DNA from: Blepharisma stoltei ATCC 30299
Taxonomy: Eukaryota; Protista; Ciliophora
Assembly: GCA_965603825.1 (NCBI GenBank)
Contig: CBFDEM010000063.1
Coordinates: forward strand, 124,001 to 188,000
Length of the DNA: 64,000 nt
Reading direction: 5' to 3'
Both the position numbers and the translations under genes were made by a program. This document shows, one piece after another, positions 23,489 to 60,474 of this stretch; the first letter of the stretch is position 1, and every line of letters begins with the position of its first letter. The notes under the pieces are model-generated. The model was not told the origin of the DNA, did no database searches, and saw only the letters and a program-made list of their open reading frames with translations.

Positions 23489-23533
23489 ATTTATATGATA
23501 AAAATGTCTAGTGATTAATAAATTAATTGGGCT

Positions 23534-24937: not shown

Positions 24938-25235
24938 TATTAAAATAAAATTTTGATAATAGAATTTTCTTCTCCTTATTCCATTTTTGGATAGTAATAA
25001 TCTATGTTTAAGTTGAGCTTTTTATCTGTCTAAGCAGAGGAAATAAGGCTATAGATTTTGCTTCTATTTATATAGACCTAATTGAATAGCTTATGCATTT
25101 TTAAATGATAATGACTTATTTTCTATAAGAAAAGCTTAAGGCCTATGATTTTTATATTTACTCCTATAAAAATAATCAATTAAATAAAAATTATTATCAT
25201 TGTGAAAAGCAGTTTTTTCTGTTTCTTTTTAATAA

Positions 25236-26714: not shown

Positions 26715-26776
26715 TATACATATATAAATTAACATCATTTTATATTAAATTTATATTATTAATATGCAATTAGAAA

Positions 26777-27409
26777 TTAGAAATTATCTTGGTTATAGCA
26801 ATTGATACTGCAGTACTCAAATACTTGCCCGTCCATATAATACCTGTCATTTGTACAGCCGAGACGTTTGCATTTTAAACTAATTGAATTTGGGCTTGTC
26901 ATTTTTATAGGAGTAGAAGGAGCTGTAGTGCTTGGAGTTCTGAATGGGTTGATTTTTTGTGTATGCTCAGTAGAGTATGGAGATCTATAGCCTTGCCAAG
27001 AAAGGTAGTGGATGTTTTCAGAGCTGCCTGGAGTTTCCTCATATTTTAGGACCCGAGAAGAAGGCCCAGGCGTAAAAGAGTGGAAAAATGGCTCTGAAAT
27101 TGGGCTTTGAAATTTTGATCGTGGAGGTGTATTTGTGGGCTCAGAAATACTTAGTGAAGCAAAATTGTTTAGGCCTTGAAAACTGTAAGGAAGCAGCTCA
27201 ATTATTGCGTTATTTTTTGGCATATCTTTGATCTTTGCTAGTGAAAGCTCAGTTGATTTCCCACAACGATTGCATTCAAAGAAAGGGAAAGGGTTGGAAA
27301 CAATGCATGCCATACAAAAAGAATCCCCACAAGGCAAAACTAACGGCAAATGATTTTCTGTGTCAAATCTTAAGGTGCATTTTGGGCAGGCTAGAGGGTT
27401 CGGGTTCAT
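26777..27409 (-). CDS. RING-type zinc finger protein (210 aa)
   Basis: CPKC...LPCGDSFCMAC...CNRC, followed by a Ser/Pro-rich region and a C-terminal Cys cluster. Confidence 0.8.
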   Translation of the reverse strand: MNPNPLACPKCTLRFDTENHLPLVLPCGDSFCMACIVSNPFPFFECNRCGKSTELSLAKIKDMPKNNAIIELLPYSFQGLNNFASLSISEPTNTPPRSKFQSPISEPFFHSFTPGPSSRVLKYEETPGSSENIHYLSWQGYRSPYSTEHTQKINPFRTPSTTAPSTPIKMTSPNSISLKCKRLGCTNDRYYMDGQVFEYCSINCYNQDNF

Positions 27410-27476
27410 TTTTAATTTATATTTTAAGATATAGGAGGGATTCTAGAGGTGTCTAAAGAGGATGCTAAAAATATTT

Positions 27477-29558: not shown

Positions 29559-29862
29559 TTCACTTAATTATTCATATTTTGGCATTTATACTTATTTGCT
29601 GAAGATAAATTTAATATAATTCAAGAATAATTTATTTTTCCTTAGAATCTTCACTTAAAGGTATGAAAATAAATAATAACTATCTAAAGAAATCTATTAA
29701 CATTTTTTAGCTAGAAAATAAAGATTAACATTATAATTTTTCTATAATGCCTTTAAGCTTCTCACATATGTTAGTTCTTTTGCTTTTCCAAATTATTTCC
29801 CAATAAAAATTCAAAATTTAATTTAACGCTGAATGTCAGTTTAAATTTAAGCCATATATAAT

Positions 29863-31326
29863 ATGGGTTGCATTCAAGCACCAGCGCCTCAAGTAGATAT
29901 GAATCTTCAGCCTGAAATCCAAGACACTAACCGTCCTCAAAGTGACAAACTCTTCGAGTGCTCCACGTCTGGGTATATCTCAGAGTTTTACTCTATCCAA
30001 GAGAGAATTGAGTCTTGCTCCTTCAGTACCGTTGTAAGAGCTGTTGACCAAGAAGGTTATGAAAAAGCAATAAGAATCATCAACAAATCAGTAATTGACC
30101 ATAACAGTATCAGCAAATTTAACGACGCTTTAAAGGCTCTACAGGATCTTGATCATATGAACATGGTCAAAGTTTTTGCAGTAATTGAAGACGAATTTAC
30201 TGTCAATATCGTCACTGAACACTGCACTGGAAAAGACCTTTTTAGCAAGATCGCTGATTGTAATCCGTTCTCTGAAAACCAAGCAGCTGTAATTATGTAC
30301 CAAATTTTGTCAGCATTAATTTCGACCCATGAGGCTGGCATTATTCATTGGGGCCTCCACCCTGAAAACTTGGTCTTTTTAGATGAATCTGATGAAGCAC
30401 CACTAAAAATTACTGAATTTGGAATATATCAATGGATAAAATCAATACCATCGATAACTGAAAATATTGATGTGTCTTTCTATACAGCACCAGAAGTCAT
30501 TGAAGGGAAATTTGACTCTAAATGCGATATCTGGAGCTGTGGAGCAATGCTTTATACTATGCTCAGTGGGGAGCCACCATTTGCAGGAAATAATAAAGAA
30601 GAAATCTTCGCCAGCATTAAAGAAGCCAGCATCAAGCTAAAAGGATCAAGATGGGGTAAAATATCTGAAGAAGCCAAAGATTTAATACGAAAAATGCTTG
30701 TGTTAGACCCAGAGCAAAGAATTGACGCACAATCTGCATTTGATGATCCTTGGATCCAAGAGCGAGCTAATGGCAATATAGACGACAACGAAATCAGCTC
30801 ACGAGTAGTCAGAAAGCTCGTCGAATTCAAGGTATTTTTTATATAGGCTAAAAACAAGCTTCAAGAAGCTACCATGGCATTTATAGCAAGCTACTTACTG
30901 CCATCCCAAGACTTGGCAGACCTTAAAAAAGCTTTTGAATCTTTAGATGTAAATCATGATGGAAAACTTAGCAAAGATGAGCTTAGACGAGGCTTTGAAA
31001 AATTCCCTAATTTGGCTGGAATCCATATAGAAGAAGTCTTCAAAAACTGTGACACAGATTCAAATGGATTCGTAAGTTACCAAGAATTTATTAACTCAAC
31101 CCTTAACTGGCAAAAAGAATTAACACAAGAGAGGCTTGAAGCAGCATTTAAAGCAATTGATAAAGATAACAGTGGGACTTTAACGGCAGATGAAGTCAAA
31201 GCATTTATAGGGCAGGGAGCTGGAGAAAATGAATGGCAAAATATTCTGAAAGAAGCTGATAAGAATGGAGATGGAGTTTTGGATCTTGACGAGTTTAAAG
31301 CAGCTATGATTAGAATAATGTCCTAA
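29863..31326 (+). CDS. Calcium-dependent protein kinase (CDPK)-like protein with four EF-hands, probable pseudokinase
   Basis: MGC N-terminus, kinase fold, 15-nt intron 30832-30846, junction, then EF-hands (DVNHDG, DTDSNG, DKDNSG, DKNGDG). Confidence 0.88.
30832..30846 (+). other. 15-nt spliceosomal intron
   Basis: GTATTTTTTATATAG, A at position 10; contains the in-frame TAG, and removal gives EFK-AKNKLQEATMAF (CDPK junction). Confidence 0.9.
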
Positions 31327-31483
31327 GACTAAATCTAATTTAATTTCAAAAATAAATAAAATTATTTTGGTGCTTAATAGTGAGAAATTGCAGATTGTGC
31401 TGGAAAACAAGGTCCATTGAATTTAAATTTGTTAAATATATATAAGTATTATACACTTTTTGAATTTAATTTAAAATGTCATA

Positions 31484-31554
31484 CTCTCGGTGGTGTATGG
31501 TGCACGCCTGTAAGGGAAATTCAGGAGGTGGAAGTTCGAGTCTTCCTCGAGAGA
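31484..31554 (+). ncRNA. tRNA-like Pol III element with non-canonical anticodon arm
   Basis: Acceptor stem CTCTCGG/TCGAGAG+A, D stem GTGT/GCAC, T arm GGAAG-TTCGAGT-CTTCC, A and B boxes, TTTTT downstream. The anticodon arm CCTG-TAAGGGAAATT-CAGG is not canonical. Confidence 0.7.
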
Positions 31555-32114
31555 CTTTTTATAAGGCATTAGTTGTAAAGCTGCATTAACCTCTCTAGCT
31601 AAAAACTAGGAATAATCTAACTACAAATTCCTAAACTGAAAAAAAAATTCAAATTTTTTCAAAAATGTCATAAGTAATTTATTTAAATAATTAATTAATT
31701 TCGAAAAATTCTAACTATTTTTTATTAGTCTTATATGAATGCTTCAGCACAAGTATGGGTACAGCCTTGCATACTATAAAAATTGTGCATTATTTTCAAG
31801 AATCACAAAATTCTAAATTAGAGTGGCTTATATAAATGATTGTGGTCAAAACATTATATGCATGCTTGATTGGATTAACCATTCTGTATTTTCAAATATA
31901 CAAGATAGCAGAATGTTAAAACCTCTTATTGCATTTTTAAACCTCAATTAATTCTCCAAATACTTATGCATCTTTTAAATTATTGCTACAATAAGTTATT
32001 TATATAAAATTAAAGCATATCTTTAATAAAAATTACCGGTTTAACCAATAAATTTCTATAGCTTTAATTCTTGCTTTGAAGTTTATATTAGCATAATTAA
32101 AAATTAAATACTTT

Positions 32115-32477
32115 CTAATAGTAAGACTTTTTCATCGTCGTTGAATACGAATACATAGGTGATGGAAAAGGCGAGCTCACCCTGCTTTGGCAGCCTAACG
32201 ATAACTTTATTCCAATCACCAATTTCTGTTTACCAGACAGTATATATGCTTCTTGTAGTGACAAATCATGGATAATTGAGTTTATTCCTTCAGGTCCGCT
32301 ATATTCCAAAATGACATCTTGAGGTGTTTTTACTTCAGAAATAAAATTCATTATAACTTTAAAAAGCTCATTGTAATCTCTTGGTCTCCTGTCAAGCGCC
32401 AGTCTTTGGTCTTCATAAACAAGGTCTACAGGCCCACTTAAATGTTCAGGCTGGACACAAGTCATATTGCATCCCAT
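32115..32477 (-). CDS. Small protein with PB1-like segment and MGC acylation motif (120 aa)
   Basis: ATG 32477 (MGCNMTC...); VILEYSGPEG..I..D..LQEAY resembles the PB1 OPCA pattern. Confidence 0.55.
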   Translation of the reverse strand: MGCNMTCVQPEHLSGPVDLVYEDQRLALDRRPRDYNELFKVIMNFISEVKTPQDVILEYSGPEGINSIIHDLSLQEAYILSGKQKLVIGIKLSLGCQSRVSSPFPSPMYSYSTTMKKSYY

Positions 32478-32498
32478 ATTAGAATAATAAAACTTAAA

Positions 32499-33251
32499 AT
32501 GGAAATAAGAGATTCTCCTGATGATCACCTTTCAGACTACTTTTTACCATCCCCAATTTCAAGTCCTCTAATCTCAGTCTTCCTCCCCAGCATTGAATTC
32601 ATGAACCTCCCTTGCAAAAGGCCTAAGCCATCTGAGACTCATGGCTATGACCCGTCAAGATTTGAGTCACAAGTCCCTGAAGACTTCTTGTGTGGCTTCT
32701 GCGAAAAAGTTGTAAGGGAGCCTTCAGAATGCATCAACTGCGGCACTCTTTTTTGTAATTTTTGCGTAAAAGAGAAAAGAGGAGCTTTTCCTTGTTCAGA
32801 TATCTCAAATGATTCGGTACAGTGTCCGAAGTGCAGCAATAAAATTGACTTTCGGAAGCTCAGCAGGGTGCTTTGTACAATGATAAATGAGATGAAAATT
32901 TACTGCAAAAATTCAAAAAGAGGGTGTGACGTGATTTCTACACTTGGGGACATAAAAAATCATGAGGAGACCTGTAAGTTTAAAAACGTAAAATGCGGAA
33001 ACCATAAATACTGCAATAATAAAGGGAAGGCAAGCGATTTTATATTGATTGAGGTGAAGCCTGTTTCGTATTATTCAAATGTGAGAAGAGCTCCTTGGCA
33101 GACTAAAATGTATGCGTGCTGCGAAATGTGCAAAAAAATGATTAAGTTCGAAAAGACTGTGATGAACAAACAGTATGATAAAGCGCTTGCTAGCTATTTT
33201 AAGACACTTAAAAAAATTGAGAAGAAGAACGGTGAAATAGCTGAAGAATAA
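32499..33251 (+). CDS. RING + TRAF/SINA-type zinc finger protein (start uncertain: 32499 or 32601)
   Basis: FLCGFC..VVREPSEC..CGTLFCNFC...CPKC and IYCKNSKRGC......IKNHEETCKF..VKC. Confidence 0.82.
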   Translation: MEIRDSPDDHLSDYFLPSPISSPLISVFLPSIEFMNLPCKRPKPSETHGYDPSRFESQVPEDFLCGFCEKVVREPSECINCGTLFCNFCVKEKRGAFPCSDISNDSVQCPKCSNKIDFRKLSRVLCTMINEMKIYCKNSKRGCDVISTLGDIKNHEETCKFKNVKCGNHKYCNNKGKASDFILIEVKPVSYYSNVRRAPWQTKMYACCEMCKKMIKFEKTVMNKQYDKALASYFKTLKKIEKKNGEIAEE

Positions 33252-33580
33252 ATAATGTTTTAAATTATTAGTCAATATATAGAGTTGGTAGATAGTAGAA
33301 ATTGTATTTTGGGTTGATTTTAGCTTCAAAGTTTAAGTTAATTAGGTAAATAGTTCCGCTATGAGGAGTGAAAACTCTTTAGGATAATTATATGTATCTT
33401 TAAATTCTTTTTTGTTTTTAATATTGAATATTTTATATCTAGCTGAGTTTCTTAAATTTCGAATTTGCTACTTCAAGAATAAAATAATTTGCTGACATAA
33501 TGAAATATAAAATCATAAAATAAATCCAACATTAATAAGCTAGCTTTTATTGATTATGAATAATGAGATAAATAATTTAA

Positions 33581-34315
33581 ATGGAGGAAAAGGCAACATC
33601 CATAATTATTTTTCTCAGCTTTTTGATCCTAGCTTACAACTGAGTACTGAAGCTCAAATTTTGCATATTGAATTGAATTCTCTATGGATCTCTAGTCGGT
33701 CTTTTCTTATTTTGAAGTCTAGGCATATTTCTGAGAAGAATAGACACAAAATTCAATATCCTTGCTAACCATGGCACATATTCTCAAGGACTCTGCAGCT
33801 ATATTTCCTATAATAACAACAAATTTTACCTTATCTGTGGCATTATAGTTGGTAGCTATATTGGGTATAATTTATCAATCATATACTCTGCATATTTAGA
33901 ACTAAAACCATCAATTGCCTTTTCCTACTTGGTTAATTCTACTGGCTCAATAATAATGACTTTAATAATGATTGGATTCGAAAATTCAAAAATTTTAAGA
34001 CGGTTTTTACCATTTTGTTACCCTGAGTCATGCCCATGAACTTATTGTGAATTTTTGAAATCATTATATATTTCTATATCTCTTGGTGAATATGTAGGTC
34101 TTATGGCGATGATTTATTTAGGGTTTTTCGAAGTAATGTATTTATTAGCATATGAAATTGTGATAGGCGTTGAGTGATATTTTATATTAGGAGGAGTTTG
34201 CTTATGCTGCTGCTCTATGACTTGTATTGGATATTATGATGAATTACAGAAAAGGAAAAAAAAGCAGGAAAAAGAAGGCGAAGTTGAGCTTGATGATATA
34301 AGAACAGCTGTTTAA
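33581..34315 (+). CDS. Polytopic membrane protein (244 aa), not in the ORF track
   Basis: Continuous ATG-to-TAA frame with five TGA read as Trp: MEEKATSIIIFLSFLILAYNWVLK...GGVCLCCCSMTCIGYYDELQKRKKKQEKEGEVELDDIRTAV; about 6 hydrophobic segments. Confidence 0.72.
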
Positions 34316-34754
34316 AATTAGGAATGGTAATAAATGTAGCTTTTCTTCAGTTTATCGCAATTTTTAATGATATAATATTAAATCAAATTAAAACTTTTTG
34401 GCAGCATTATAATAGTTTTGAGGTAAATTTATATTCTGAAAAATTTATACATGATATTATATACATATGAAGCTTGGATTATATTGATTGTAGGATATCC
34501 TGATGACATTAATGCTTATATATCTCCGGTTTGTTTATTTCACAAATTCAATTCAAATCTCATCATGAGGTGTAACCGTTTGACGTCTCCCATATCCCAC
34601 ATCTTCACTTCTAAATTTTGACCCTAACCTTCGATATAATTAATTTAAATAGTCCTCACAATGCCATATATTTTATTATCCTCATCCATGCCTCATTTAC
34701 TTTTCATTCCCATCTCTCATATTTATTACTTTAAAGAAACTCAACTACTAAAGA

Positions 34755-35003
34755 ATGGAAAGATCAATGACTGGCTCTCAAGATGTAAATAGCACACTGA
34801 GTTTTAATGGAAACGTGAAACCAATTTTGAAATTGCCGATTCCCACAGAGAAAATCTTCTGCTTTGCTGGGAGTCCTGTACAAATCGACCATAAAAAGTG
34901 CAAAGTCTCATTTCGAAAACCTGTGCAGAATGTAGTGTTGGTGGAACCTATCATTTATGAGCACGAGAAGAAAATCAAGAGTTGCGCATGTGAAATATTT
35001 TAA
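34755..35003 (+). CDS. Small protein with RVxF-type motif and C-terminal CaaX (82 aa)
   Basis: KVSF motif; ends KSCACEIF-stop. Confidence 0.65.
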   Translation: MERSMTGSQDVNSTLSFNGNVKPILKLPIPTEKIFCFAGSPVQIDHKKCKVSFRKPVQNVVLVEPIIYEHEKKIKSCACEIF

Positions 35004-35300
35004 ATTCTTAGCTAAGCTAATAATGTTCATATATTGCCAATAAAAAGGGTTAAAAATTGTTTTCAAAACGAAAAGGCTTGATAATTCAGGCAAAAAGTAA
35101 GCATTGAGATAATTTAAAATAAATTGAAGTAAATGATTATTACTGGATTTTATTTAGAGTTACGAAAAAAAATATGAAAGCTACAGATATTGAGGATTTT
35201 TCATAAGGTGTTGGTCCTAGTGTCTTTTCTGTATAACTACAGTCAAGCCCTAGAGAAAATATAATTCTCAAAAATAAATCCCACATGTCAATCAAATAAT

Positions 35301-35879
35301 ATGGAAGCCAACTATAAAGAAATCCCTGCTGCCCTTCGCGGATCTCATAGCGACTCCAGCGACGAAGAAAGCGGGACAATGCAAACCTTTGACATCGAAA
35401 GCGAAGATATCGGCCCCGGTCCTTTTTCCCAGCGAATCAAGTACTTCTGCTACTTCCTTATCCTAACATGCTGACTTCTTCCTCTCATTTCTTACTTCAC
35501 CGGCCCAGAATCCTATATTTACCTGATTATGTCCGTCATCTCGCTCGCTCAGCTGATAATTGGGGTTTTAGGGGTGATTTGGTCGAAAAAGAATAAATTC
35601 ACCCATATTACATTCTTTCGCCTGCTTCTACATTTGTTCTTTATTTCACTCATTGTGGCTCTTGTAGGTTACGAAGCGTTTGGGTTAGCGTTCACAGTCC
35701 AACATAACTATGACAACTGCAATGATTTTACCTTTAATAAAGTGTGCAAAAACCGGGGAGGACTCATGTCAGAACAGATGGTGTTGATACTGCTACTTCC
35801 AGCACTAGATGCTCTGGTAATTTTGCTGTATATTTATGTCACCAAACTTGCTAAGAAATGTGCATTGAAGATGACTTAA
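35301..35879 (+). CDS. Four-TM membrane protein (192 aa)
   Basis: ATG 35301 is in frame with ORF 35529 through one TGA (ILTC-W-LLP); four hydrophobic segments with a Cys pair in the last loop. Confidence 0.75.
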
Positions 35880-35908
35880 ACGGCATTAATAACTTAATAG
35901 AAGTTATG

Positions 35909-36469
35909 CTACTTAAAGGTAAAATAAGTGTCTTTTGAGAGCTTTGAGAGCCAGTTTCTGTATCTCAAACTTTCGTATTTTTCTAAGTTGTTTGCTATAG
36001 GAAATAGAGGAATCATACTTTTAACGTATGGGTTTCTTATTTTTTTCCAATTTATCTGTGGGCCTGGAGCTGCTATCTTTACAGCAGGCTGAGGAGAATA
36101 AATGTATGAAAGTTGATCCCTATTTCTTTCCTGGCAAATTTGTCTTAAAATGTCATTTTCGACTTTCAGGAAATTTTTTTCTTTATTTTTCAATTTGATA
36201 GCTCTGTCATCTAAAATTTTCTTTATTTTCATCAGTTTATTATCAGGAAATTCGCAATTGATTGAATCTCTTCTTCATAATGCTAAATCTTTTCGTAATC
36301 TTTCTCTCTCTGATTCTAATCTCTGCTTTATTCTATTGTCTTTTATTATCATTTCTTTCAAATTTGGAAGATCATTTTCTTCATCTAAATCTTCAAACAT
36401 TTGAATTTCTGCTAATACTTGACTATCCTCTATTTCAGGATCAGAATCGATAAAATCGATATCTTCCAT
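35909..36469 (-). CDS. Hypothetical protein (186 aa)
   Basis: ORFs 36275-36469 and 35909-36232 join in frame through TGA at 36275; ends TAG. Confidence 0.65.
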
Positions 36470-36797
36470 TTAACTGCTATTCATTTTAAACAAAATAATT
36501 ATTTCTTTAATAACAGTTATGCTGAAAAAATGCTTAAAGATATCAAGAAGAAAATAATAAATATATATATGATAATTTTTGCAAATTAAATTTAAAGATG
36601 CAAGCAATTAATAGAATTTTATACAGAAGTGAAGTTAATTGTGATTTATTATGGTAAATAAGAATTAAACAGGCTTTTAAATTAACACTTTAGATAAATA
36701 AGAAAATTAAAAGTGATAATGAGTATTATCGAAGGCTGATAAAGGAATCAGCAAAAAGAAGAGTATTTAAAAACAATTTGAGAATTAGACCCAGCTA

Positions 36798-36878
36798 GAC
36801 AGTATGGCCGAGTGGTTAAGGCGACAGACTTGAAATCTGTTGGGATCTCCCGCGCAGGTTCGAATCCTGCTACTGTCG
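36798..36878 (+). tRNA. tRNA-Ser (anticodon UGA)
   Basis: GACAGTA/TACTGTC acceptor, ACAGA-CTTGAAA-TCTGT anticodon arm, long variable arm, GGTTCGAATCC, G discriminator, oligo-T terminator. Confidence 0.97.
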
Positions 36879-37297
36879 TTTTTTGAATTTTAGGATAGTA
36901 TCGAATAAATGTTTTTTGCAAAAAATTACTGCTTCCTAAATATATCTTGCTGAATATTTTATAAAATTAACAATAAAATCAAAGGCATTCGAAGACTATA
37001 TCCTTCAATTATTATTCAGAAGAGCATTTTAAAAATCGTTTTAGTAAAAAAGTAATAGCTAAATATTTCTTTGAAATAACTTCTTAAAGTGTATTAACTC
37101 TTATATTTTTATCATTTATTCTTTTATATCTCCATACTTATAATTTCTTAACTATTATTAAAAATGCTTAGCCACTCTTCACTATTCTCAAGCCCACACA
37201 GCCTCCTAACCCTTCATTCCTAAATTAATATCTCTACCTAAAATCTCTTTCTATTCTTTATTTTTTCCGTTTTTACATTTATTAATAAACTAATTCC

Positions 37298-38797
37298 ATG
37301 AGTACTTGCATACATTGCAATAAACCTGCAAAATTTGAGTGCCTATGCAACTCTCATCCTCAATGCTTCTGCGAGTCACATCTTCCAGATCACATAATAA
37401 ACAACGTGACTCTAGTTCATAAGTCACATGCAATACAAGGAGCTAATGAAGAAAACATTGAAACCTTTGTCTGCACTATCTGCGAAAAGAAGCCTGCAGA
37501 GATGATTTGTCTTTGCCAAGGTAGCAAGACCAAGCTCTGCCAGCCCTGCACATTAGTCCACTTTAAAAAACACCCCGAAAATTCACATCCTTTAGAGCCA
37601 ATTCGTGCTGATGAATTTTTAAAAAGTGCAGCTGATTTAAATGAGTATTTAGGAAGAAAACAAATTATTGATTTCTATATGAATGAACTGAGGATTAATA
37701 TTTCAAATCTAGAAAAGTTTTCAAACGATTTAGATTTGACAAGGACTCAGCTGGTCAATCATATTGACAAACTTTTCAATGAAGTTAAAGAAGAAGCAGT
37801 GACAGGAAAAGCTAAGTATGAAGGATGGATCAACGAACTAGAAAACGCAAGATATAAAAAGGAATTAGACGAAACTCGATGGGCTGACTCTTTAATTAGA
37901 AGGTCAAATTTGAACAATATGGCAACGGTTGCCCAAGAGCTTAAAGTAAATTTATCTGATTTAGATATTGAGCCAGCCGTCAGATCTATTGCAAATATCG
38001 CGAAATTGAGTTTTGAAGAGCCTCATTATGACCAGAAAATATGCTATTTTAAGGCTAGGTATAAAGAATTTACATGTGTAAATCTGAATAAGCTGGAAGT
38101 CTCAAAAGTGAATTTCCCAGCTACTTTTAAACTGAAAGATGGTGGTAGTTGATGCGATATCGGCTTTGGGAAGATTTTCCACTGTGGAGGTTTAGATGAA
38201 AGCTCATTCAGCTCTTCTGCTTGTCTTATTGATACTGGCTCCCTCAATTTTTCAGAGCTCCCCAATATGCATTTCCAAAAAGCTCTTCCTGGCCTTTATT
38301 ATTTTCAAAAGCGTGTTTTTGTATTCGGTGGATATTTTAATGGAGAAAGTTTAAAGTCTGGAGAAGTTTATGATTTTTCTAAAAATGAATGGAAAATCCT
38401 GCCAGACATGCCGACAGCCAGGAGTGCGTTTACAATAGCGAGGCTTGGGAAGTTTTTGTATATGTGTGGAGATTCACATAAAGTTGACGTTTTTGACACT
38501 GAAAGATTGTGCTTTGTGGATTGTGATATTGAGCTACCTGAGGCTGACTCTTATTCCACCCTAGTAGAAAATAATGATCACTTATTACTATTCCAGAATG
38601 AAAAGTGCTGGAAAATTGAAGTCAGCGCAAACACAGTTCAAGAACTTACAAGAATACCAAAAGGACAATGATGGAGTGTTTTCCCTCCTATATCATTTCA
38701 AGGGAATCTATTTTTTACGAGATATGACGATTTCTCGCTGTGGAGGTTTGATACTGAAAATTATGAGCTCAGCAAGCAGTTAAGGTTTTTAGAATAA
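37298..38797 (+). CDS. Tandem B-box-like + coiled coil + Kelch-like protein (499 aa)
   Basis: TGA=Trp at 38150 and 38669; VFVFGG...GEVYDF..NEWKILPDMPTARS; ends TAA at 38795-38797. Confidence 0.85.
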
Positions 38798-38914
38798 TTA
38801 TAATATGGAAATTTGTGCCGAAATTTGAGTTTTTTATAAATAATGTAATAATTAATTATTATGATTTAAATAAATTTTGATGGAATTATTAGAGTTTAGA
38901 ATATTTTCTATTAT

Positions 38915-39562
38915 TTATTTGAGCACCCATCCGTTTTCTGTTTCTTTAGCTACCTTATTGAGTACGCTTATAATTTTTGTACTTGGCATTGAAGCACTAT
39001 CAAAAATATCTCCTCATAGTGTTGATATAGAGAAGTGCATACTAACTACAAGACCTTCTTGATTAAGGACTGGCCCTCCTGAATACCCAAATCCTCCTTT
39101 ACATGATGAAAGATAGCAAGGAATACGAGTAGATTCCAATTTCGTGAATTCTGTGTTAAGTATATACCCAGGCTCAAAAACTTTGACATTATTCGCATAA
39201 ACCCCATATAAACAGACTCTTTCCCCTATTCTCGGTGGTAATTTACTAAGCCTCAAAAATGCATTATTTTCTAGTTTTTTCGCTTTGACGATCAGCAAAT
39301 CAGCTTCTTTATCATATGAAACCACAGAAAATTCATATTCCTCGTCTCTATAAACCAATTTGCATTTCTTTAATTCTCTTTTGGCATCATCAATAAAGTG
39401 ATGAACACTTAATCCGAGTCCATTTGGGCCTATAAAAAAACCTGAAGCCGCCGTATATTCATGCTTCAAATAAAATAAGCCTGGGTTTACAGTGCTATTA
39501 AGGCTTTTCCAGTCATCTAAGCAATACACATACGAGTTAAGCAAGGAAATCCATCTAATCAT
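38915..39562 (-). CDS. Trypsin-like (HtrA/DegP-type) serine protease domain protein (215 aa)
   Basis: ASGFFI...LSVHH, ADLL and GYSGGPV supply the His-Asp-Ser triad; TGA=Trp at 39014; ends TAA at 38915. Confidence 0.82.
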
Positions 39563-39592
39563 ATTAAATATCCATAAAACTTATGTGATTAG

Positions 39593-40429
39593 TTACTCAA
39601 ATGGCTTGTATTCTCCAGCGACAACTGCATGATCCACTTCATAAGGCTCCAAAGTAAGCATTTCTTTTGGTGCAAATCCCATTTCCTTCAAAGTTTCAAT
39701 TTCTCTTTCAAAAACAACGCTCGGCTCTACAGTAGAGTCAATGCAATTCGCCTTAATCGAAATCACAAAGTGTCCTCCATTTTTCACAAAATGCTGAGCA
39801 TTATGGGCCAAAATTCTTGCCTGGTCTCTTTGTGCGACATCAGCAAAAATCACGTCGACCATTGGTACAAGCATTCTATATCTCATTGGGTGTCTGGCGT
39901 CGTCTACAATAGGGATGACATTTGTCCTTCTTTTGGCCATATTGACGAGATCTCTGCCTGATCTGTGAGAAAATTCGACAGCATAGACTGCTCCTTCAGG
40001 CCCGACAATGTCGGAAACATGGCTGACAGTTGTCCCTGATGCAGCGCCGAGATAGAGAACTTTTGCACCTGGCTGGATCCAGATCTGGTCGATTCCTCCT
40101 AAAATTGCTGCAGCAATTTTAGACCTATAAGGATTCCAAACTCGGTATTCGATTTTGTCTTCGCCGACTTGGACTGGGATTCGCTTTTCTTGATATACAC
40201 TTTCCCCGGGGGCGAAACTTTTTGTGACTAAGGAGTCTTCGTTGCCTCTGGCGATGAAGATTCCTGGAAATCTGTGAGGCTCGATTAAGACTTTAGAGCC
40301 ACCTTTCATGCCTCTTGGACCGCCACGGCCACCTCTTGGACCTCCTCTTCCGCCTCTTGGGCCACCTCTTGGTGGTCCACCACGGCCTCTTGGTGCTCCT
40401 CTGCCTCCTCCGAAGTCGCCTCTAACCAT
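39593..40429 (-). CDS. NOP1: Fibrillarin (rRNA 2'-O-methyltransferase)
   Basis: GAR/RGG N-terminus, [39 protein letters not shown]. Confidence 0.98.
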
Positions 40430-51378: not shown

Positions 51379-52842
51379 ATGGGAAACTGCAGCAACAGCG
51401 CAAAACCTGATATCCCTCAGTCAGAAATTTCATACTCAGAAATCGCAATGCTGAAAATCAAAGAGCGTGACTATTCAGGACAAGTCATAAACCACGACAA
51501 AATAAAATTCAAATTGACATCTCCATGTCTCAACCAAACTGCCAAGTTCTTGCACATGCCTTATGCCTTTGACATCACAGGAACAGTTCTACCTGGGCTT
51601 GACCCTCGAGAACTTGTTGATAAGGAATGCCAAGACAACCTCTTTTTTGTGGAGAAAGAAAATACCCTCTTCGCTGCACTTTTTGACGGGCATGGCCAAG
51701 ATGGGTTTAAAGTCACCGAATTTTGCAAGAGGTTCATGAATCGGCAATTTAAAGAAAAATTCGAAGATTTTAAAGTGAAGCCTAAAGAAGCGATCAGCAA
51801 AATAATTGAGGAATGCGATGCATCGCTCAAAGCAAATGCTGGGGACGTAAATTATTTAATATCAGGGACCACTGCTGTTGTGCTGTTTATAGATGGAAAT
51901 AATATGTATGTAGGGAGTGTAGGGGATTCTCGGGCTATTTTGGGGACTATTCCTAAGTCTGATGATGAAGTGTCAAAAGCTATAAGAACACTTAAGCCTG
52001 TTCCTTATAAAACAGCGATTGAGCCAAGAAGGCTGCTAAAATCAATAGCTCTCACTGTCGATCAAAAGCCAAACCATCAAGAAGAACTCGAAAGGATTCA
52101 AAAATCAGGCGGAAAAGTCCAGCAGTTGACAGACGACAGAGGAATGAAAATAGGCCCATTTCGAGTGTGAAAAGGAAACGGAAATATCCCAGGCTTAGCA
52201 ATGTCAAGGTCAATAGGTGACGGAATTGCCAAAGACTGTGGAGTTATTTCTACTCCAATAGTCCACGATTTTCAGCTGTTTCCTGATAGAGACCAATTCA
52301 TAGTCATGGGCTCAGATGGGGTATGAGATGTTTTTGACAACCAAGAAGCCGTGAATTTTGTAGAGAAATACCGCTCAGAGTGTGTGAAAACTCCTGTCAG
52401 AGATAATTCGTATCCTATCAAAGTAACTCATATTTAGCCTGATAACTCAACTATATCTCAATTGTTAGGGGAAGAGGCAAGATATAGATGGTTTGGGGTC
52501 TGTGAGGACGAAGATGTGATGATTGATGATATTTCTGTGATTGTCATAGAAATAAGCACCTTAGTACCGATGTCAACGATTGATATGAGTGAAACTGAGG
52601 ATAGGAGGACTGTGAGGCTTAATAGCTTGGGAGATATACAAGACTCGAAGCCGATGGTAGCAAATATGCTGAGGGGAGATGCGGTAAGAGGAAGCTTTAT
52701 ACCAGCAAAGGACCCAAATGCAAAAAGGATAAGAATTGACCCGAAAAGAGGATCACATGCTGTTGTAGGGGGAGAAGAAGCTGAGGAAACTGAAGCTGTC
52801 ATCGATGTCCCATTTGTCGATGAAGAGCATAAACTGGATTAG
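51379..52842 (+). CDS. PP2C (PPM) protein phosphatase with MGNC acylation motif (482 aa)
   Basis: QD, LFDGHG, SGTT, VGDSR, RV-W(TGA), GLAMSRSIGD, SDGV-W(TGA)-D, DDISV; 15-nt intron at 52423-52437. Confidence 0.93.
52423..52437 (+). other. 15-nt spliceosomal intron
   Basis: GTAACTCATATTTAG, A at position 10; contains the in-frame TAG. Confidence 0.88.
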
Positions 52843-53112
52843 TTTATTAAGTTCAAAAAATTTAGAGAATGCTAAAAAATAAATATGGATTATTAATTTT
52901 TAAAATTCCCGAACAATAGCTAGAAGCATTTTAAAATAAAATTATTTTAGGTTGAGGTATCATTTGAATTATACTTGCACTTATATTGTTTAATAGAGAT
53001 ATTATCCTTAGCGATTAATTTGAATAATTTATCTAAGCATAAAGAATAATTTTATAGAAGCATAATTTATAAGGAGATGCATGCTTGTACAGCCTCTATT
53101 CAAGATCTAGTT

Positions 53113-53176
53113 AAAAAAGCTATTGCGCCAGGAGTGGAAATTCTAATATTTTGAAGTAACTCCTTAGCATTGAGCC
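53113..53176 (-). ncRNA. Vault-RNA-like small RNA, copy 1 (minimal form)
   Basis: GGCTCAATGCTAAGGAGTTACTTC-17 nt-ACTCCTGGCGCAATAGC-TTTTTT; upstream TATTTAA and ACCCATAA. Confidence 0.7.
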
Positions 53177-53197
53177 ATCTATATAATCCCTCCTGAC

Positions 53198-53237
53198 TTA
53201 AATATTTCAATAAAAATTATGGATTTCTATTATGGGT
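53198..53237 (-). promoter_or_regulatory. USE/PSE (ACCCATAA) + TATA-like box of RNA copy 1
   Basis: TATTTAA at -22..-28 and ACCCATA at -55..-61 from the predicted start at 53176. Confidence 0.65.
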
Positions 53238-53725
53238 GGATTTAATATATGAATAAAACTAATAATAAAGATTAAATTATTTGTCGGGCTTATGAAAATA
53301 TTTGCAGTTGTTTTCTGAATTAATAAAGAACAATTAGATTAAAATTAAAAAAATTATTAGTGTGATATAAAACATTGTTTGAGCACACGATTAATTATTA
53401 TGCATATATAAAGTGTCAAAGTTTATTAAATGGTTTTGGTCTGAAATATAATTCATAAGCATCTTTATTTTTAGCAGCTATAAAGTCTTTGGTCATTCAT
53501 TCCTATAGTAAAGTTCATAGTTAAAATTTTTATTAAAGCTGCGGATTGCAGCTTAGTCCAACAAAGGCATATTGCCTTTATGCAAGTTATAAGGTGCATA
53601 TTTTATTATTATTGAATGGCTATTGATGTTCTTATTCATTTTGTATAAATCCTAAAACATTAAATGAATGATTTCTTAAATCAGAAAGTTGTGATAATAA
53701 CTTCAACTCTTATTTGCTTTGCCAG

Positions 53726-53829
53726 AAAAAAATTATTGCGCCAGGAGTGAATCTAAGTCAACATGCTTGCGCCTGCATCGATAGAAACGCAATTCTGAAT
53801 AAATCGAAGTAACTCCTTAGCATTGAGCC
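53726..53829 (-). ncRNA. Vault-RNA-like small RNA, copy 2 (type A)
   Basis: Same conserved ends; variable middle with a GC-GCAA-GC hairpin; T7 terminator; upstream elements present. Confidence 0.75.
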
Positions 53830-53850
53830 ATCTTTATACTCTATAAATAT

Positions 53851-53890
53851 TTAAATATCAATACAAATATGATAAATTAATTTATGGGGT
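53851..53890 (-). promoter_or_regulatory. USE/PSE + TATA-like box of RNA copy 2
   Basis: TATTTAA at -22..-28; CCCCATA at -54..-60. Confidence 0.6.
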
Positions 53891-54063
53891 AAAAACTACA
53901 ATAAATTCTGCTAACGATAGCTAAACATTTTTAAATCGTAATTATAAATTTTATATTATTTAGCATGCTTATTATAAGGTGCTTATTTATTTGCTTATGC
54001 TAATTTATATTTTATAAAATAATTGGAAACTTGAAAGCATCTATATCAAAAGTTTTTTATTGT

Positions 54064-54163
54064 AAAAAGACCACTGCGCCAGGAGAAGTCTAGAGCAGGA
54101 TAGAACTCACGCCCAACCCTTCAGTAGATTCAATACAGGCGATATGAAGTAACTCCTTAAGCA
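54064..54163 (-). ncRNA. Vault-RNA-like small RNA, copy 3 (type B, 5'-truncated, probably inactive)
   Basis: AAGGAGTTACTTC...CTCCTGGCGCAGTGGTC-TTTTT retained; the 5' terminal strand and upstream elements are absent. Confidence 0.6.
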
Positions 54164-54441
54164 CTATATTTTTAGCTACTATAAAGTAAGCTGCATTTCA
54201 AGATATAATGATCTTTGGTCATTCTTTGCTTTAGTAAAGCCTGCAGTTAAAAATTGCTGCAGATTATAGCTTAGCTCAACAAAATATATTGCCTTTATGC
54301 AAGTTATAAGGTGCATACCTTATTACTATTGAATAGCAATTAATGTTCTTATTCATTTTGTCTAAATCCTAAAACATTAAATAAATTATTTCTTAAATTA
54401 GAAAGTTGTGAAAATAACTTTAACTCTATTTGTTTTGCCAG

Positions 54442-54540
54442 AAAAAAGCTATTGCGCCAGGAGTGGATCTAAGTCAACATGCTTGCGCCTGCTTCGATAG
54501 AAATTCATATGAAATTGAAGTAACTCCTTAGCATTGAGCC
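54442..54540 (-). ncRNA. Vault-RNA-like small RNA, copy 4 (type A)
   Basis: GGCTCAATGCTAAGGAGTTACTTC...ACTCCTGGCGCAATAGC-TTTTTT; upstream elements present. Confidence 0.78.
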
Positions 54541-54561
54541 ATCTTTATACTCTATAAATAT

Positions 54562-54599
54562 TTAAATATCAATAAAAATATGATAAATTAATTATGGGA
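54562..54599 (-). promoter_or_regulatory. USE/PSE + TATA-like box of RNA copy 4
   Basis: TATTTAA at -22..-28; TCCCATA at -53..-59. Confidence 0.6.
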
Positions 54600-54773
54600 T
54601 AAAAATTACAATAAATTCTGCCAACAATAGCTAAACATTTTTAAATCGTAATTATAAATTGTATATTATTTAGCATGCTAATTATAAGGTGCTTATTTAT
54701 TTGCTTATGCTAATTTATATTTTATAAAATAATTGGAAACTTGAAAGCATCTATATCAAAAGTTTTTTATTGT

Positions 54774-54877
54774 AAAAAAACCATTGCGCCAGGAGTATCT
54801 AAAGAAGGATAGAACTCACGCCCAACCCTTCAATAGGCATAATTCAAAGTTACGAAGTAACTCCTTAGCATGGGGTC
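54774..54877 (-). ncRNA. Vault-RNA-like small RNA, copy 5 (type B)
   Basis: GACCCCATGCTAAGGAGTTACTTCG...ACTCCTGGCGCAATGG-TTTTTTT; compensatory terminal stem; upstream TGACCCATAA. Confidence 0.78.
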
Positions 54878-54898
54878 ATCATTATAATCCCTATTTAT

Positions 54899-54938
54899 TT
54901 AAATATCTAAGATGAATGATAATTTCACTTATGGGTCA
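54899..54938 (-). promoter_or_regulatory. USE/PSE (TGACCCATAA) + TATA-like box of RNA copy 5
   Basis: TATTTAA at -22..-28; TGACCCATA at -53..-61. Confidence 0.7.
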
Positions 54939-55377
54939 AAACTTGAAAATTTATAAATTTATGGTTAAGCAAAAATGGATTTGTCATCTCGCTTATTCTT
55001 ATTTCCTCCCTATATTAAAATATTCTATATAAATATTGATATAAATCTTTCACAGATTTTGCTAAGCATATCATTTCGCTTTTCCTTATAAATGATAAGT
55101 ATAAAAAATTAAAATTTCCTATATCTCAAGGGATTATAAAGACTGACACATCATATTTTCTTATAAATTATAGATTATTTAACTTCTATGCCACCCTCTT
55201 AAACAATCAATTTTTTAAAAAAATACTGACTGCATTTCTGTATTAAAATTAGTTTTTATTTTGATTTTTCTAAATAAGACAGCATTTATTAATAAGAAGT
55301 GCTTCTTTTAATATATAAAAATGTGACATGAAAGGATTCTTTCATTTTTAAAGTAAATTGGAAAACGTATATTGGAA

Positions 55378-58300
55378 ATGTCTTTATATCACTTTAAAGC
55401 ACTAGTATACAAAAATTGAATACTTTGGTATCGAAGACCACTAGGATCATTCTGTGAGCTTTTTTTCCCTATACTTGTATTTATCGTTTTATATTGGGTA
55501 AGAACACAAGTGACTTCTGATGAATACGAAGCAGAAAGTTACCTTAATAACGCAACTTATGTATCCCCAACTCAAACAACATCAGTTTCCTTTGAATTCG
55601 AATCTTCTATACCATTTTTGCAATGCTTAGGATATGTTGCACAAGGAGAGGAGTGGATTGTCGGACTTGCACCACAAAACGAAATAACTGAATACATTGA
55701 AGACCAGCTTGGCGACTATTTAAGAAGAGTTGAGGTCAGGTATTTTGAAGATGACGATGCAATCGAAGATTATGTTAAAGACAGTGACTATGAGGACGGG
55801 CCAAAGCTTTGTTTTGCTGTCGTTTTTACAGAGTGAAGTGATAACTACGTGGAATATAAAATCAGATTCAACCAGACTGATTCAATACCTGATGACGGCT
55901 TTGCAATAGGCGATTACGTGGATATTTTTAATTTCAATGACAATGAAGCTACTAATGAGCGACAAAGAGAGCCAAAGCCTGAATTCCAAGCACAATTTTT
56001 TTCGACTGGGTTCATACAAATACAAAATTGGGTCGATAATTATTTATTGCAAAAATATACAGGAAGCACAAATTCATACATTGCAGCAGGATTCGTGCCA
56101 ATGTATTTTGATGAATGAATTGATGATGACTTTTTGGAGTATTTGGCAAATTTTTTGGCGTTTTTTATTATACTTAGCTTTGGAATTCCAGTTTGTAGGA
56201 TGGTGACACAAATAGTTGAAGAAAAGGAAACGAAAATTAAAGAAATGATGGTTATTATGGGGTTATCTGGGACTTCCTATTGGGCTGCTTGAATTTTATA
56301 TTACTTTTTCATATATTTAGCCATAGCAATTGGAGCAGCATATATCCTAAGTCGCAATTTCTACGAATATAGTGACATTTCTATCATTTTCATTACTTAT
56401 TTTTTACTTGGACTCTCTTGTATTTCCTTTAGTCTACTTCTGAGTATTTTTTTCTCAACTGTAAAAACAGCCCTTATTTTTAGCATCATGATCTTTTTTG
56501 CCACATTTTTCGCATATTTTGCAGTAGACGACCCTCTTATATCGACTTCTACAAAGTACTGAATTTCAATTATACCTTCTGTTGCTTTTTCATTAGGGAC
56601 ACAAATCATGGTTGAGCAAGAAAGAGGGTATATTGGTGTAACATATGATAACATCACTGAAGAGCTTTTCAATTATAAATACTCAGCTTGCATCATTTTT
56701 ATTGCTATCGACACAGTTGCTATATTTTTGCTGTTTTTATATCTTGAACAAGTATGGCCATCTGAGTATGGGGTCAAAAGACCATGGAATTTTTTATTCA
56801 AAAAAGAGTTTTGGGTTGAAATCCCTGTAGAAAGTAAAGATTTTGATGATAGGATTGAGAAAAACGAAAACACAGAAGAAGTTGATGCAATTCTTGAGGA
56901 GCAAAAAAACAAAGGAAAAGTTATGATGATCAGAAACCTCACAAAGAGCTATGATGGAGCGCTTGCAGTTGATAATTTAAGTCTTGATATATATGAAGGA
57001 CAAATTTTTGCATTGCTAGGGCATAATGGTGCTGGAAAAACAACAACGATTTCAATGCTAACAGGAATGATAAATGTTACTAGTGGAGATATGATGGTCA
57101 GAAATTTATTACTGTCGAAAGACCTCAAGAAAATTCGAAAGCTGTTGGGTGTTTGCCCACAGCAAAATATTCATTATCCAGAGCTAACTCCTGCTGAGCA
57201 TTTATACTTATTTTCTGTTTTTAAAGGAAAAACAAATAGCGATGAAATTAGTAAAGAAATCAATGAAAAATTGGAAGAAATCATGCTGGTTCCTCAAAAA
57301 GATGTCCAGGTAAAAACATTATCAGGTGGCCAAAAGAGAAAACTTTCTCTTGCAATTGCTTTAATAGGAGGCTCTCCAATTATTTTGCTAGATGAGCCTA
57401 CATCAGGAATGGACCTCAATGCCAGAAGGCATATGTGGGAAATGCTTAAAAACAACAAGCAAGAAAGAATAATTATTTTGACAACCCACTATATGCAAGA
57501 AGCAGACACTCTTGCAGACAGAATTGCAATTCTTTCTCATGGAAAGCTCAGATGCTGTGGAAGCTCATTATTTTTGAAAAATAAATTCGGAGTAGGGTAC
57601 TACTTGGTCCTTGTTAAGCAGTCTAATGTATACAGTCCACAGCATTCAAAATTAATCATTGATTTCGTAGAAAAATATATTCCAAACTCAAGACTAGTAA
57701 GTGATGTACAAGCAGAAATTTCATTTCAGTTACCATTGTCAAGCTCAGGACAGTTTAATGATTTTTTTCAAGCTTTGGATGAGAAAAAGACGGAATTAGA
57801 AATTAGGTCTTACTCTGTGTCTGTGACAACGCTAGAAGAAGTCTTTATAAATGTTACTGAAAAGACTCAAGAAATTAAAGAAAATGAAGAAAATCTTAAT
57901 GAGACAAGATTCCAGGAAGGTGAAAACGAACTTCTGGTGGAAAAACCTAAAGAAACGAGCACGCTTTTTATCAGACATTTCAAAGCTTTGTTGAAAAAAA
58001 GGATACTATGGAGCATGAGAGACTTCAAAACTTTTACTTTTGAAATTTTGATTCCAATGTCTTTAATCACAATTGGAATAATTTTTCTCTTGATTGCTGA
58101 TCGATATATTGACCAAGACCCTTGGGATTTAGTAATTGACCAGTATGATACCCCTCAAAATATCCTGTACCCAGACAATATAAATGACTATACTTCTCAG
58201 CTGATGTCCTCTTTAGACTCCATGGAAGATATTGACACTTCAGGCATCACAGCTGAAGATATTGAAGAATTCGACCTGCTGATATTTGAGAACCGAGAAG

Positions 58301-60474
58301 TTGACCCGACACGTATGGGTTCTTATTATTACTACACCATGAATTCTGATATTGACAGATATGAACCAGTAATTTTCCACAACCAGACCGCTTTTCAATC
58401 TTTACCAACCTACTACCAGCTTGTTGCATTAGAAATCTTAAAAACATATAACCCAGATCTAGAAATTTTGGTACAAAACCACCCTTTGCCTATCACAGAA
58501 AAAATGAATGAGTTCGAAGCCTCCATAAGCTCATTCATTATCACCATAATTTTCGGTCTAGGAGCTGCATTTATTCCTGCAAGTATTGTCTCTTTCATTG
58601 TAAGAGAAAAAGAAAACAACGTGAAATTCCAGCATATGATAAGTGGGGCTTCTATGTGGGCGTATTGGATTTCTAATTTCATATGGGATTATGCGAAATA
58701 TTTAGTCATTGCAATTTATGTATGTGTTTTAATTGTGATTGTGGACATAAATATCTATGTTGATGAAGACGACCGGTATGCAGCCTTTTGACTGATTTTT
58801 ATTTTATATGGCTTGAGTGTGATCCCTTTTACTTATTTAAGCAGTTTTATTTTCACGAACCATAATACAGCACAAGTGATCACAATATCGTTTCATTTTC
58901 TTACAGGCTCTTTTTTACCAATTGTGATGATTTTTATGTGGTTTTTTGACGACACAAGAAACTATGTCAGAGAATGGAGGTGGTTTTTTAGGCTTTTCCC
59001 AAATTTCTGCTTTGGTAATGGAATTTTGCAAATAGCGTCCCAAGAGTTTATAGCGTATTTTGATGGTGATGAAACTGAGCCAGTGTTTTCATTAGAAGCA
59101 GCTGGAGGCGACATTTTATATCTTGGAGCCACAGCAGTAGGCTATTCAATTTTACTGATTTTTGCAGAGTGAATTAACAATAATCGTGCTCTTGGACAGT
59201 TTATAACTCAAAGATTAGCAGGAAAGCCTTCAGAATATCTATCAGATGAAGATGTAGAATCTGAAAAGCAGCTTGCCTTAATAACAAGCCCACAAGACGT
59301 TAAAGTAAATGTAAGAGAGCTGAGAAAATTTTATGGAAGCTTATTCGGCTCAAGAGTTATTGCTGTTGAAGAAGTCAGCTTTAATATCCCAAGCCAGCAG
59401 TGCTTTTGCTTACTAGGGTCTAATGGAGCTGGCAAAACAACTGTATTTAAAATTCTTGCTGGAGAGATTATAGCAAGCTCTGGTGAAGCTTTTATAGGAG
59501 GCTACTCCATTAATACTTCATTGACTTCAGCCAGAAAATGCATAGGATACTGTCCTCAGTTTGACGCTTTAAGTGAAAAATTGACCTGCAAAGAACACAT
59601 AAGACTGTACTGTGACATCAAAGGAATTAATAAACAAAAAATCGCTGAATTGACAAAAAATCTATTAAGAGAATTAGATTTAGAGATGTACGAGGATTAT
59701 AAAATGGAAAATTTAAGCGGAGGAAATAAACGAAAACTTTCAGTAGCCATTTCTTTAATAGGCAGCCCTGATGTAATACTTTTAGATGAGCCGTCAACTG
59801 GAATGGACCCAGAAACAAGGAAAAAACTGTGAAGAGTTTTGGGAAATTTGAAAAAGCAAAATTCTTCAGTTGTGTTGACGACCCACTCAATGGAAGAAGC
59901 TGAAGCACTTAGTGATCGGATTGCTATCATGGCTGCTGGAAGAATTAGATGTATTGGCTCTTCTTCACATATTCGAAATAAATTCGGTCAAGGTTATGAG
60001 CTTGACGTCAAAATAAAAATCCCAAAGCAAGAAAAAATCCACATTTTGAGCAAAAAATTGGACTTAGAATTAAAAGATGCCACACAAATAAGAGAATTTC
60101 AAATTAAAAAGTGTTTGCAAGCTTTAGAAGCTGAAGACTTGGAAGAGGTATTTAATTCAAAAAATATAGGATTTGCGATGCAGTTGAAAAATGAAGGAAG
60201 CATTGCGAGAGACTCGTTTATTTCATGAGTTATTACTGAAAAAAGAGGCTTGAAAGTGCTAAAGTGACTTAAAGGAGAGTTCAAAGATGTTGAATTAGTT
60301 GAGCATTATTTGAGCTCTTATAAATATAGAATTACTAAGCAGGATGATAGATCGCTAGGATATCTCTTCTCTTTGGTGGAAAAATCGAAAAAATCATTGA
60401 AGATTTCTGAGTATTCGATTTCACAAACTTCTCTTGAACAAATTTTTACTGAGTTGTCTAGTAACCCTAATTAA
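55378..60474 (+). CDS. Full-length ABCA-subfamily transporter (1698 aa)
   Basis: ATG 55378 (HFKALVYKN-W-ILWYRR..ELFFP). Two TMD-NBD halves: GHNGAGKTT/LSGGQKRKL/LLDEPTSG and GSNGAGKTT/LSGGNKRKL. About ten in-frame TGA=Trp; C-terminal SQTSLEQIF; ends TAA. Confidence 0.95.

Follow-up and report, generated by a model that had tools for sequence, protein, structure and literature searches.

A 21-gene family of candidate vault RNAs in the ciliate Blepharisma stoltei

The largest ribonucleoproteins of eukaryotic cells include vault particles, whose function is still unclear. To our knowledge, vault RNA has been described only in animals and trypanosomatids, and in full-text literature searches covering ciliates in general, Blepharisma and the model ciliates we came across no vault RNA reported from a ciliate. 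The Tetrahymena protein p80, through which TEP1 was discovered, proved later not to belong to the core subunits of telomerase; we know of no natural RNA ligand of p80. Here we describe a cluster of five small RNA genes on the minus strand of a 64,000-nt stretch of the macronuclear genome of Blepharisma stoltei (contig C63; the whole stretch is referred to as the window, and the cluster was read in positions 52800-55300), together with the 21-gene family to which the five copies belong. On sequence grounds these genes are the best-supported candidates for vault RNA in ciliates so far, although this identity is not established.

The closest case outside animals is the vault RNA (vtRNA) of Trypanosoma brucei. 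This RNA (TBsRNA-10; Kolev et al. 2019) is reported to have been assigned by its bulged terminal helix and by short similarity at the 5' and 3' ends (PMC9326685). It is encoded by a single gene, transcription by RNA polymerase III (Pol III) and co-purification with TEP1 and MVP were shown by experiment, and the organism has three MVP paralogues and TEP1 as its only TROVE protein, with no Ro and no Y RNA (PMC9326685, PMC12547018). Among ciliates, MVP is already known in Paramecium and Oxytricha (PMC3762200). The published Blepharisma macronuclear assembly is made up of 64 telomere-to-telomere contigs, and UGA is read as tryptophan (PMC9942806).

Exactly five perfect matches to the 13-mer AAGGAGTTACTTC are present in the window (53153, 53806, 54146, 54517 and 54854), without exception on the minus strand. 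When up to two mismatches were allowed we found eight matches in the window, a number that none of 100 shuffles reached. All five copies carry CTCCTGGCGCA(A/G)T and then, within a few bases, a run of 5-7 T, and the genes measure about 62-104 nt. A covariance model, R1, was built from the five window copies, and a second one, R2, from all genes found in the genome. The copies are listed here with their scores on these models and on the Rfam Vault model (RF00006), for which the gathering cut-off is 34 bits.

54774-54877, minus strand: c1, type A RNA gene of about 100 nt; R1 104.8 bits, Rfam Vault 24.7 bits over the full length
54442-54540, minus strand: c2, type B RNA gene of about 96 nt with GGCU start and T6 end; R1 114.4 bits, Rfam Vault 26.2 bits (E 0.0065)
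54064-54166, minus strand: c3, type A copy, promoterless, with altered 5' end (GUGCUUAAGGAG); R1 79.1 bits, R2 37.6 bits
53726-53829, minus strand: c4, type B RNA gene of about 101 nt with T7 end; R1 114 bits, Rfam Vault 18.9 bits
53113-53176, minus strand: c5, short form of about 62 nt with T6 end; R1 76.8 bits, Rfam Vault 23.0 bits
53486-54930, no strand assigned: two tandem units of about 715 bp with 92-95% identity, each containing a type A gene and a type B gene (repeat families D2-D5, spacings 710-726)

The type A copies c1 and c3 have an inner hairpin in common, and the type B copies c2 and c4 share another centre; the units of the tandem duplication are c1 with c2 and c3 with c4. In c1 the RNA begins with GACC, the inner hairpin has a degenerate box-B-like loop and the gene ends in T7; the terminal stem GACC/GGUU is a compensatory change with respect to GGCU/AGCU. 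The terminal stem of c4 is weakened (GGCU/AAUU). The short copy c5 is made up of the conserved panhandle and an 18-nt loop, and folds as the family panhandle. In c3 the promoter and the first bases of the RNA were lost at the junction of the tandem duplication, and an extra U is found in the 5' strand of the helix. This copy also has a U-U mismatch at pair 21/147, and its minimum-energy fold is not that of the family. As promoter elements are missing, the 5' end is altered and the family models give c3 their lowest scores, we take it for a probable pseudogene that was left behind where the tandem duplication has its edge.

RNAalifold, applied to the five window copies without any vault model, predicts a terminal stem of 4 bp and, beyond a small internal loop, a helix of 10 bp in which one A is bulged; when folded singly, c1, c2 and c5 show this structure as well. 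Across the 21 distinct sequences of the family, standard pairs make up 97.6% of cells, compared with 41-59% when the 3' partners are slid by 1-3 columns, and a covariation score as high was obtained in none of 500 shuffles; the 21-sequence alignment had been fitted to the structure of the model, which biases both figures in favour of that structure. The structure was first obtained model-free, and the double changes are visible by eye. In five pairs both partners are changed, as when GGAGU/ACUCC becomes GGAGA/UCUCC or GGAG/CUCC becomes AGAG/CUCU; these two-sided changes involve the inner end of the helix (U-A to A-U), GGAG/CUCC (G-C to A-U) and the terminal stem (three positions). After the 5' strand of the helix comes an invariant (U/A)UACUUC, and the centre is variable (18-76 nt), often with a small hairpin. 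Paired ends, a helix with a single bulge and conserved stretches at the 5' and 3' side, as expected of a vault RNA, are all found in these sequences.

The genome searched comprises 41.46 Mb in 64 contigs. With R1 we identified 21 distinct family genes on six contigs, and R2 returned the same set:

C63, minus strand: five genes, the window cluster
C6: five genes, starting at 246733, 247371, 247950, 262914 and 266944
C7: seven genes, starting at 1340, 28018, 30664, 31506, 33344, 34460 and 96348
C12: one gene, starting at 121201
C50: one gene, starting at 230685
C53: two genes, starting at 146048 and 146766

The majority subtype has GGAGAUACUUC where the others have GGAGUUACUUC, and carries a small GCCUUCGGGC hairpin ahead of the 3' strand. 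The family is well defined and its genes are real. The preliminary description of the window, which was made from the sequence without database searches, had reported five minus-strand copies with these motifs and T-runs and had given much the same lengths; exact motif counts and measurement bear this out. It had also proposed the pairing GCUA-bulged A-GGAG/CUCC-UGGC with a short terminal stem, which is what RNAalifold predicts and what covariation across the 21 genes supports. The small cluster it had described exists with its five genes, but the family is spread genome-wide and is not confined to it.

Exact-motif matches elsewhere in the genome appeared on inspection to be due to chance, many of them lying in apparent coding sequence, with the exception of one 5' fragment on C44 (650552-650610, minus strand; L063:1501-1575). 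This 36-nt piece corresponds to the 5' end of a type B RNA and begins exactly at GGCU; it is intergenic and flanked on both sides by a 15-nt direct repeat (AGCTCCTYAGAATCC). It looks like an inserted copy of the 5' part of the RNA, which would be an indirect hint on expression. On C7, about 18 kb (21600-40000; L092, L094) are devoid of any open reading frame (ORF) of at least 150 aa in an otherwise gene-dense genome, and five family genes lie inside. Between these genes we noticed weak matches resembling C/D-box small nucleolar RNAs (e.g. L048:1198-1266, 27.3 bits, below cut-off), and nothing in C7:21600-40000 was found at Rfam's thresholds.

Regarding the sequences upstream of the window copies, two elements recur on the minus strand, a proximal sequence element and a TATA-like box:

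54929-54935, minus strand: c1, proximal sequence element CCCATAA, at about -59 from the inferred start (same element and spacing at the U6 gene)
54899-54906, minus strand: c1, TATA-like box ATATTTAA, at about -30 (pattern match and comparison with U6)
54592-54598, minus strand: c2, CCCATAA (pattern match)
54562-54569, minus strand: c2, TATA-like box (pattern match)
53882-53888, minus strand: c4, CCCATAA (pattern match)
53851-53858, minus strand: c4, TATA-like box (pattern match)
53230-53236, minus strand: c5, CCCATAA (pattern match)
53198-53205, minus strand: c5, TATA-like box inside GAAATATTTAAG, a 12-mer that is identical in the U6 promoter

In these four of the five copies CCCATAA is located 55-57 nt and ATATTTAA 26 nt ahead of the first aligned base (pattern match), while upstream of c3 neither CCCATAA nor a TATA box was detected by pattern match and inspection. 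CCCATAA occurs 11 times in the window, four times at family genes. The genome has a single clear gene for U6 small nuclear RNA (snRNA), at C53:457433-457536 on the plus strand (93.6 bits). Its promoter carries TCCCATAA at -60 and ATATTTAAG at -30, the same layout as in the family genes, and this locus (L060:1440-1604) can serve as a reference promoter for finding other snRNA-type or Pol III genes in the genome. The arrangement of a ciliate U6-type promoter (CCCATAA near -60, a TATA-like box near -30) is found at four of the five window copies and, as judged by eye from the upstream sequences, at most of the 21 genes. The run of 5-7 T lies immediately after the 3' stem. By analogy with the spacing at the U6 promoter, transcription would start at GGCU (GACC in c1), four bases inside the alignment and at the first base of the terminal stem. 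With a T-run right after the 3' stem and with these upstream elements the copies look like Pol III genes with a type 3 promoter, both promoter and terminator being recognised on sequence alone, and we regard it as very probable that they are working RNA genes of the Pol III type. Internal promoter elements are less evident: the 5' strand GCUAAGGAG bears only partial resemblance to box A, and box B is absent in most copies and degenerate in c1 and c3.

The lack of a promoter at c3 and the 36-nt fragment of C44 between its direct repeats would also be in line with silent repeats or pseudogenes, i.e. a decayed or mobile element derived from tRNA rather than a working RNA gene family. Three listed runs with the same species label gave no RNA on positions 53000-55000 either; these are contig sets that held none of the sampled words, so that the result is uninformative and no proof of absence. 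We consider this explanation highly improbable, as promoter elements stand at fixed spacing upstream of most of the 21 genes, the helices are kept by compensatory changes and the T-run terminators are conserved. There is furthermore no tRNA similarity: ARAGORN reported no tRNA in 52800-55300 or in the metagenomic relative L070 described below, and no Rfam tRNA match was obtained in the region.

At the gathering thresholds of Rfam no family matches in the cluster region. In a permissive scan of 2.2 kb with 4227 families, four of the five window copies had Vault as their top family (E 0.0065-0.75; the scores are those listed above), and the alignments are full length, covering positions 1-99 of the model. 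One gene on C6 reaches 26.9 bits, the genome-wide best among family genes. Altogether five of the 21 genes were matched, and at each of them Vault is the top Rfam family. The alignments contain the same terminal stem, the same helix of 4+4 bp and the same bulged A as the structure supported by covariation, and the unpaired GUUACUUC and the GGCGC of the Vault consensus are matched in the family genes. In a genome-wide search with the Vault model, in which 49 of 2452 candidates were scored, the best unrelated match listed has 21.5 bits (E 0.64 per genome); it lies, as judged by eye, in apparent coding sequence and was taken as chance. Extrapolated at a factor of two per bit, 26-27 bits would correspond to an E of about 0.02 per genome.

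A relative of the family was found outside Blepharisma. We scanned metagenome contigs with a pattern derived from the Blepharisma family and obtained 16 matches, among which L070:993-1075 (metagenome contig Ga0163179_10197345) is clearly recognised by the family model with 46 bits. Another, L076, gave a partial match of 19 bits and was taken as chance. As a control, 12 pattern matches in bacterial and viral collections were examined; the family model recognised none of them, so the 46 bits of L070 are not produced by the search pattern, and none of 26 chance matches to the pattern was comparable to L070. The RNA of L070 has a length of about 80 nt, a terminal stem of 5 bp whose two strands both differ from those of the Blepharisma stem, and the same bulged helix; its gene is closed by a T-run and preceded by TATAAAT at about -28. 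It further contains a hairpin with the canonical box-B sequence GGUUCGAUCCC, and on the Vault model it scores 32.9 bits (E 6e-5), just under the cut-off. Box B was absent from the search pattern and yet is present in this member, which links the family to classical vault RNA genes. The adjoining reading frame of L070 (3-930, plus strand) has six in-frame TAG codons and ends with TAA, which suggests that the host is a protist reading TAG as an amino acid, with TAA still used as stop. For the last piece of this neighbouring ORF no homologue was found among database proteins.

On the protein side, the genome has MVP in three paralogues (open frames of 831, 847 and 866 aa), each with several Vault repeats and the MVP shoulder, as well as exactly three TROVE genes (606, 596 and 590 aa). 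The TROVE loci lie at C30:505262-506434, C27:399834-400973 and C56:124793-125881. A vWA-type domain follows TROVE in two of the three TROVE proteins, DUF7788 being just above cut-off in both; the Ro60 vWA model is at cut-off only in the 596-aa protein, and in the third protein TROVE alone was detected. Named relatives of all three bear the name 'telomerase protein component 1' or else 'telomerase component p80-like', and a 719-aa Tetrahymena protein shows 35% identity over 98% of the TROVE query. MVP and a TROVE protein of the TEP1 type are accordingly both present in the organism.

These proteins also bear on the question whether the RNAs could be Y RNA-like ligands of a Ro60-type protein, with a role in RNA quality control and not in vaults. 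Y RNAs are likewise clustered, with type-3 Pol III promoters, paired ends, a bulged helix and variable loops, and TROVE proteins that carry a vWA domain and measure about 600 aa are of Ro60 size. However, the Y RNA model (RF00019) gave no match up to E 10 in the region, at the other loci or genome-wide. The three TROVE proteins have relatives named TEP1 or p80, and no Ro60 name occurs among the 120 TROVE relatives listed. Two of the three were queried against solved chains and matched none named Ro60, only two chains labelled 'TROVE domain-containing protein'. A Y RNA-like nature of the family is therefore very unlikely.

A more serious alternative is a lineage-specific family of Pol III RNAs that is unrelated to vault RNA and serves another ribonucleoprotein, regulation or as a source of small RNAs, the likeness in the bulged panhandle, UUACUUC and GGCGC having arisen by chance or convergence. 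Vault scores under the cut-off with only five genes matched, a promoter of the U6 type instead of internal A and B boxes, and the unusually high number of genes are all in agreement with it. On the other hand, the Vault alignments run over the full length on helices that have independent support from covariation, L070 with its canonical box B is still more vault-like, and MVP and TROVE proteins of the TEP1/p80 type need an RNA partner, for which no other candidate was matched. We regard such an unrelated family as possible but doubtful.

Homology to vault RNA, with a function as ligand of the TEP1/p80-type proteins, is in our judgement moderately probable for the family. It is favoured by the top-ranking, if sub-threshold, Vault alignments, by their agreement with the covariation, by the box-B-bearing L070 and by the protein setting. 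The preliminary description had inferred that the five copies are vault RNAs, pointing to the shared GUUACUUC and GGCGC motifs, and had named a better match to another Rfam family or a lack of MVP or TROVE genes as evidence against this. The motif likeness holds, and the three MVP and three TROVE genes, the latter of TEP1/p80 type, are in place; no other Rfam family does better than Vault, which ranks first for four of the five copies with full-length alignments. The identity itself is partly supported, with scores below cut-off, 16 of the 21 genes unmatched and an upstream promoter.

Several points weigh against a vault RNA identity. All Vault scores (18.9-26.9 bits) stay below the 34-bit cut-off. 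The 16 genes without a Vault match include the majority type with GAUACUUC and the GCCUUCGGGC hairpin, and no Vault match appeared in scans of about 1 kb around two genes on C7 and the two on C53, with E values up to 10 admitted. There is no clear box B and the promoter lies upstream, unlike in animal vault RNA genes, and 21 genes are far above the 1-4 usual for vault RNA. The three listed runs, uninformative as they are, gave no transcript on the region. There is also a selection effect, as the region was picked for its resemblance to vault RNA. It is the scores below cut-off, the 16 unmatched genes and the U6-type promoter without clear box B that leave the assignment not established. For the fuller statement, namely that the genes encode true vault RNAs, with no earlier case in ciliates or the whole SAR group (stramenopiles, alveolates and Rhizaria), with an expansion to 21 genes, a switch from box A/B to a U6-type promoter and the role of the missing p80-type ligand, we see little better than an even chance.

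We envisage the following course. Each gene would be driven by an snRNA-type upstream promoter (as at U6, TCCCATAA near -60 and a TATA-like box near -30), and would be transcribed by Pol III from GGCU (GACC in c1) to a stop within the T5-7 run. The ends of the RNA pair, according to prediction and covariation, into the 4-bp terminal stem, the internal loop and the 10-bp helix with the bulged A. This conserved bulged helix is a putative docking site for the three TROVE-vWA paralogues of TEP1/p80 type, which would stabilise the RNA and carry part of it into shells of the three MVP paralogues, as in mammals and Trypanosoma brucei.

Should this hold true, MVP, TEP1/p80 and vault RNA would occur together in animals, kinetoplastids and alveolates, which would speak for a complete vault ribonucleoprotein in the last eukaryotic common ancestor already. 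The family would also provide a third, very distant lineage for defining the conserved parts of the RNA (bulged helix, UACUUC, GGCGC), and the U6-type promoter, the absence of box B, the 21 genes of several subtypes and the 62-nt form would be new for vault RNA. With about 62 nt, c5 would offer a natural short RNA for binding studies, and the family as a whole would be a concrete candidate for the p80 ligand.

The cluster is flanked by a gene for a PP2C phosphatase (51379-52842), next to c5, and by one for an ABCA-type transporter, of which a part is located at 56608-58791. The PP2C gene is on the plus strand and is apparently split into pieces when the bacterial code is used; the pieces share one reading frame, which would be expected with UGA read as tryptophan. 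Protein searches with genes broken by in-frame stops were made piece by piece. Two orthologues of this gene (71% and 58% identity, both truncated at the same place) were found in one Logan assembly (SRR24908292). In the 32.7 kb around these two loci no family member was detected, and the similarity stops at the PP2C gene. At 36798-36878 (plus strand) the window has an ordinary tRNA gene (Rfam tRNA 67.8 bits), the sole match in the window at the gathering threshold.

Comparing the family with the systems known, Y RNA with Ro60 resembles it in the type-3 Pol III promoter, the clustered genes, the bulged paired ends with a variable loop and the class of TROVE ligands, whereas the Y model does not match the Blepharisma family and no protein of the Ro60 type turned up in the genome. 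Animal Vault RNA (RF00006) resembles the family in its length of about 60-120 nt, the T-run end, the variable centre and the small gene clusters. It has the same build of terminal stem, internal loop and 4 bp + bulged A + 4 bp, with GUUACUUC after the 5' strand and GGCGC in the 3' strand, and also the setting of MVP with a TEP1-type TROVE protein. The Blepharisma RNAs differ from it by a terminal stem of 4 bp instead of 6 and by GAUACUUC in most copies, and their genes by the lack of box B, the upstream CCCATAA and TATA elements, their number of 21 and the 62-nt short form. T. brucei has the same set of proteins as Blepharisma (three MVPs, a TEP1-type TROVE protein and no Ro), the RNAs being likened by description; it has a single vtRNA gene, in contrast to 21 genes in Blepharisma that are known from sequence alone. 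With regard to Tetrahymena p80, the TROVE protein first purified with telomerase, the three Blepharisma TROVE proteins are relatives from the p80/TEP1 branch, and the RNA family described here may represent the ligand of a p80-type protein.

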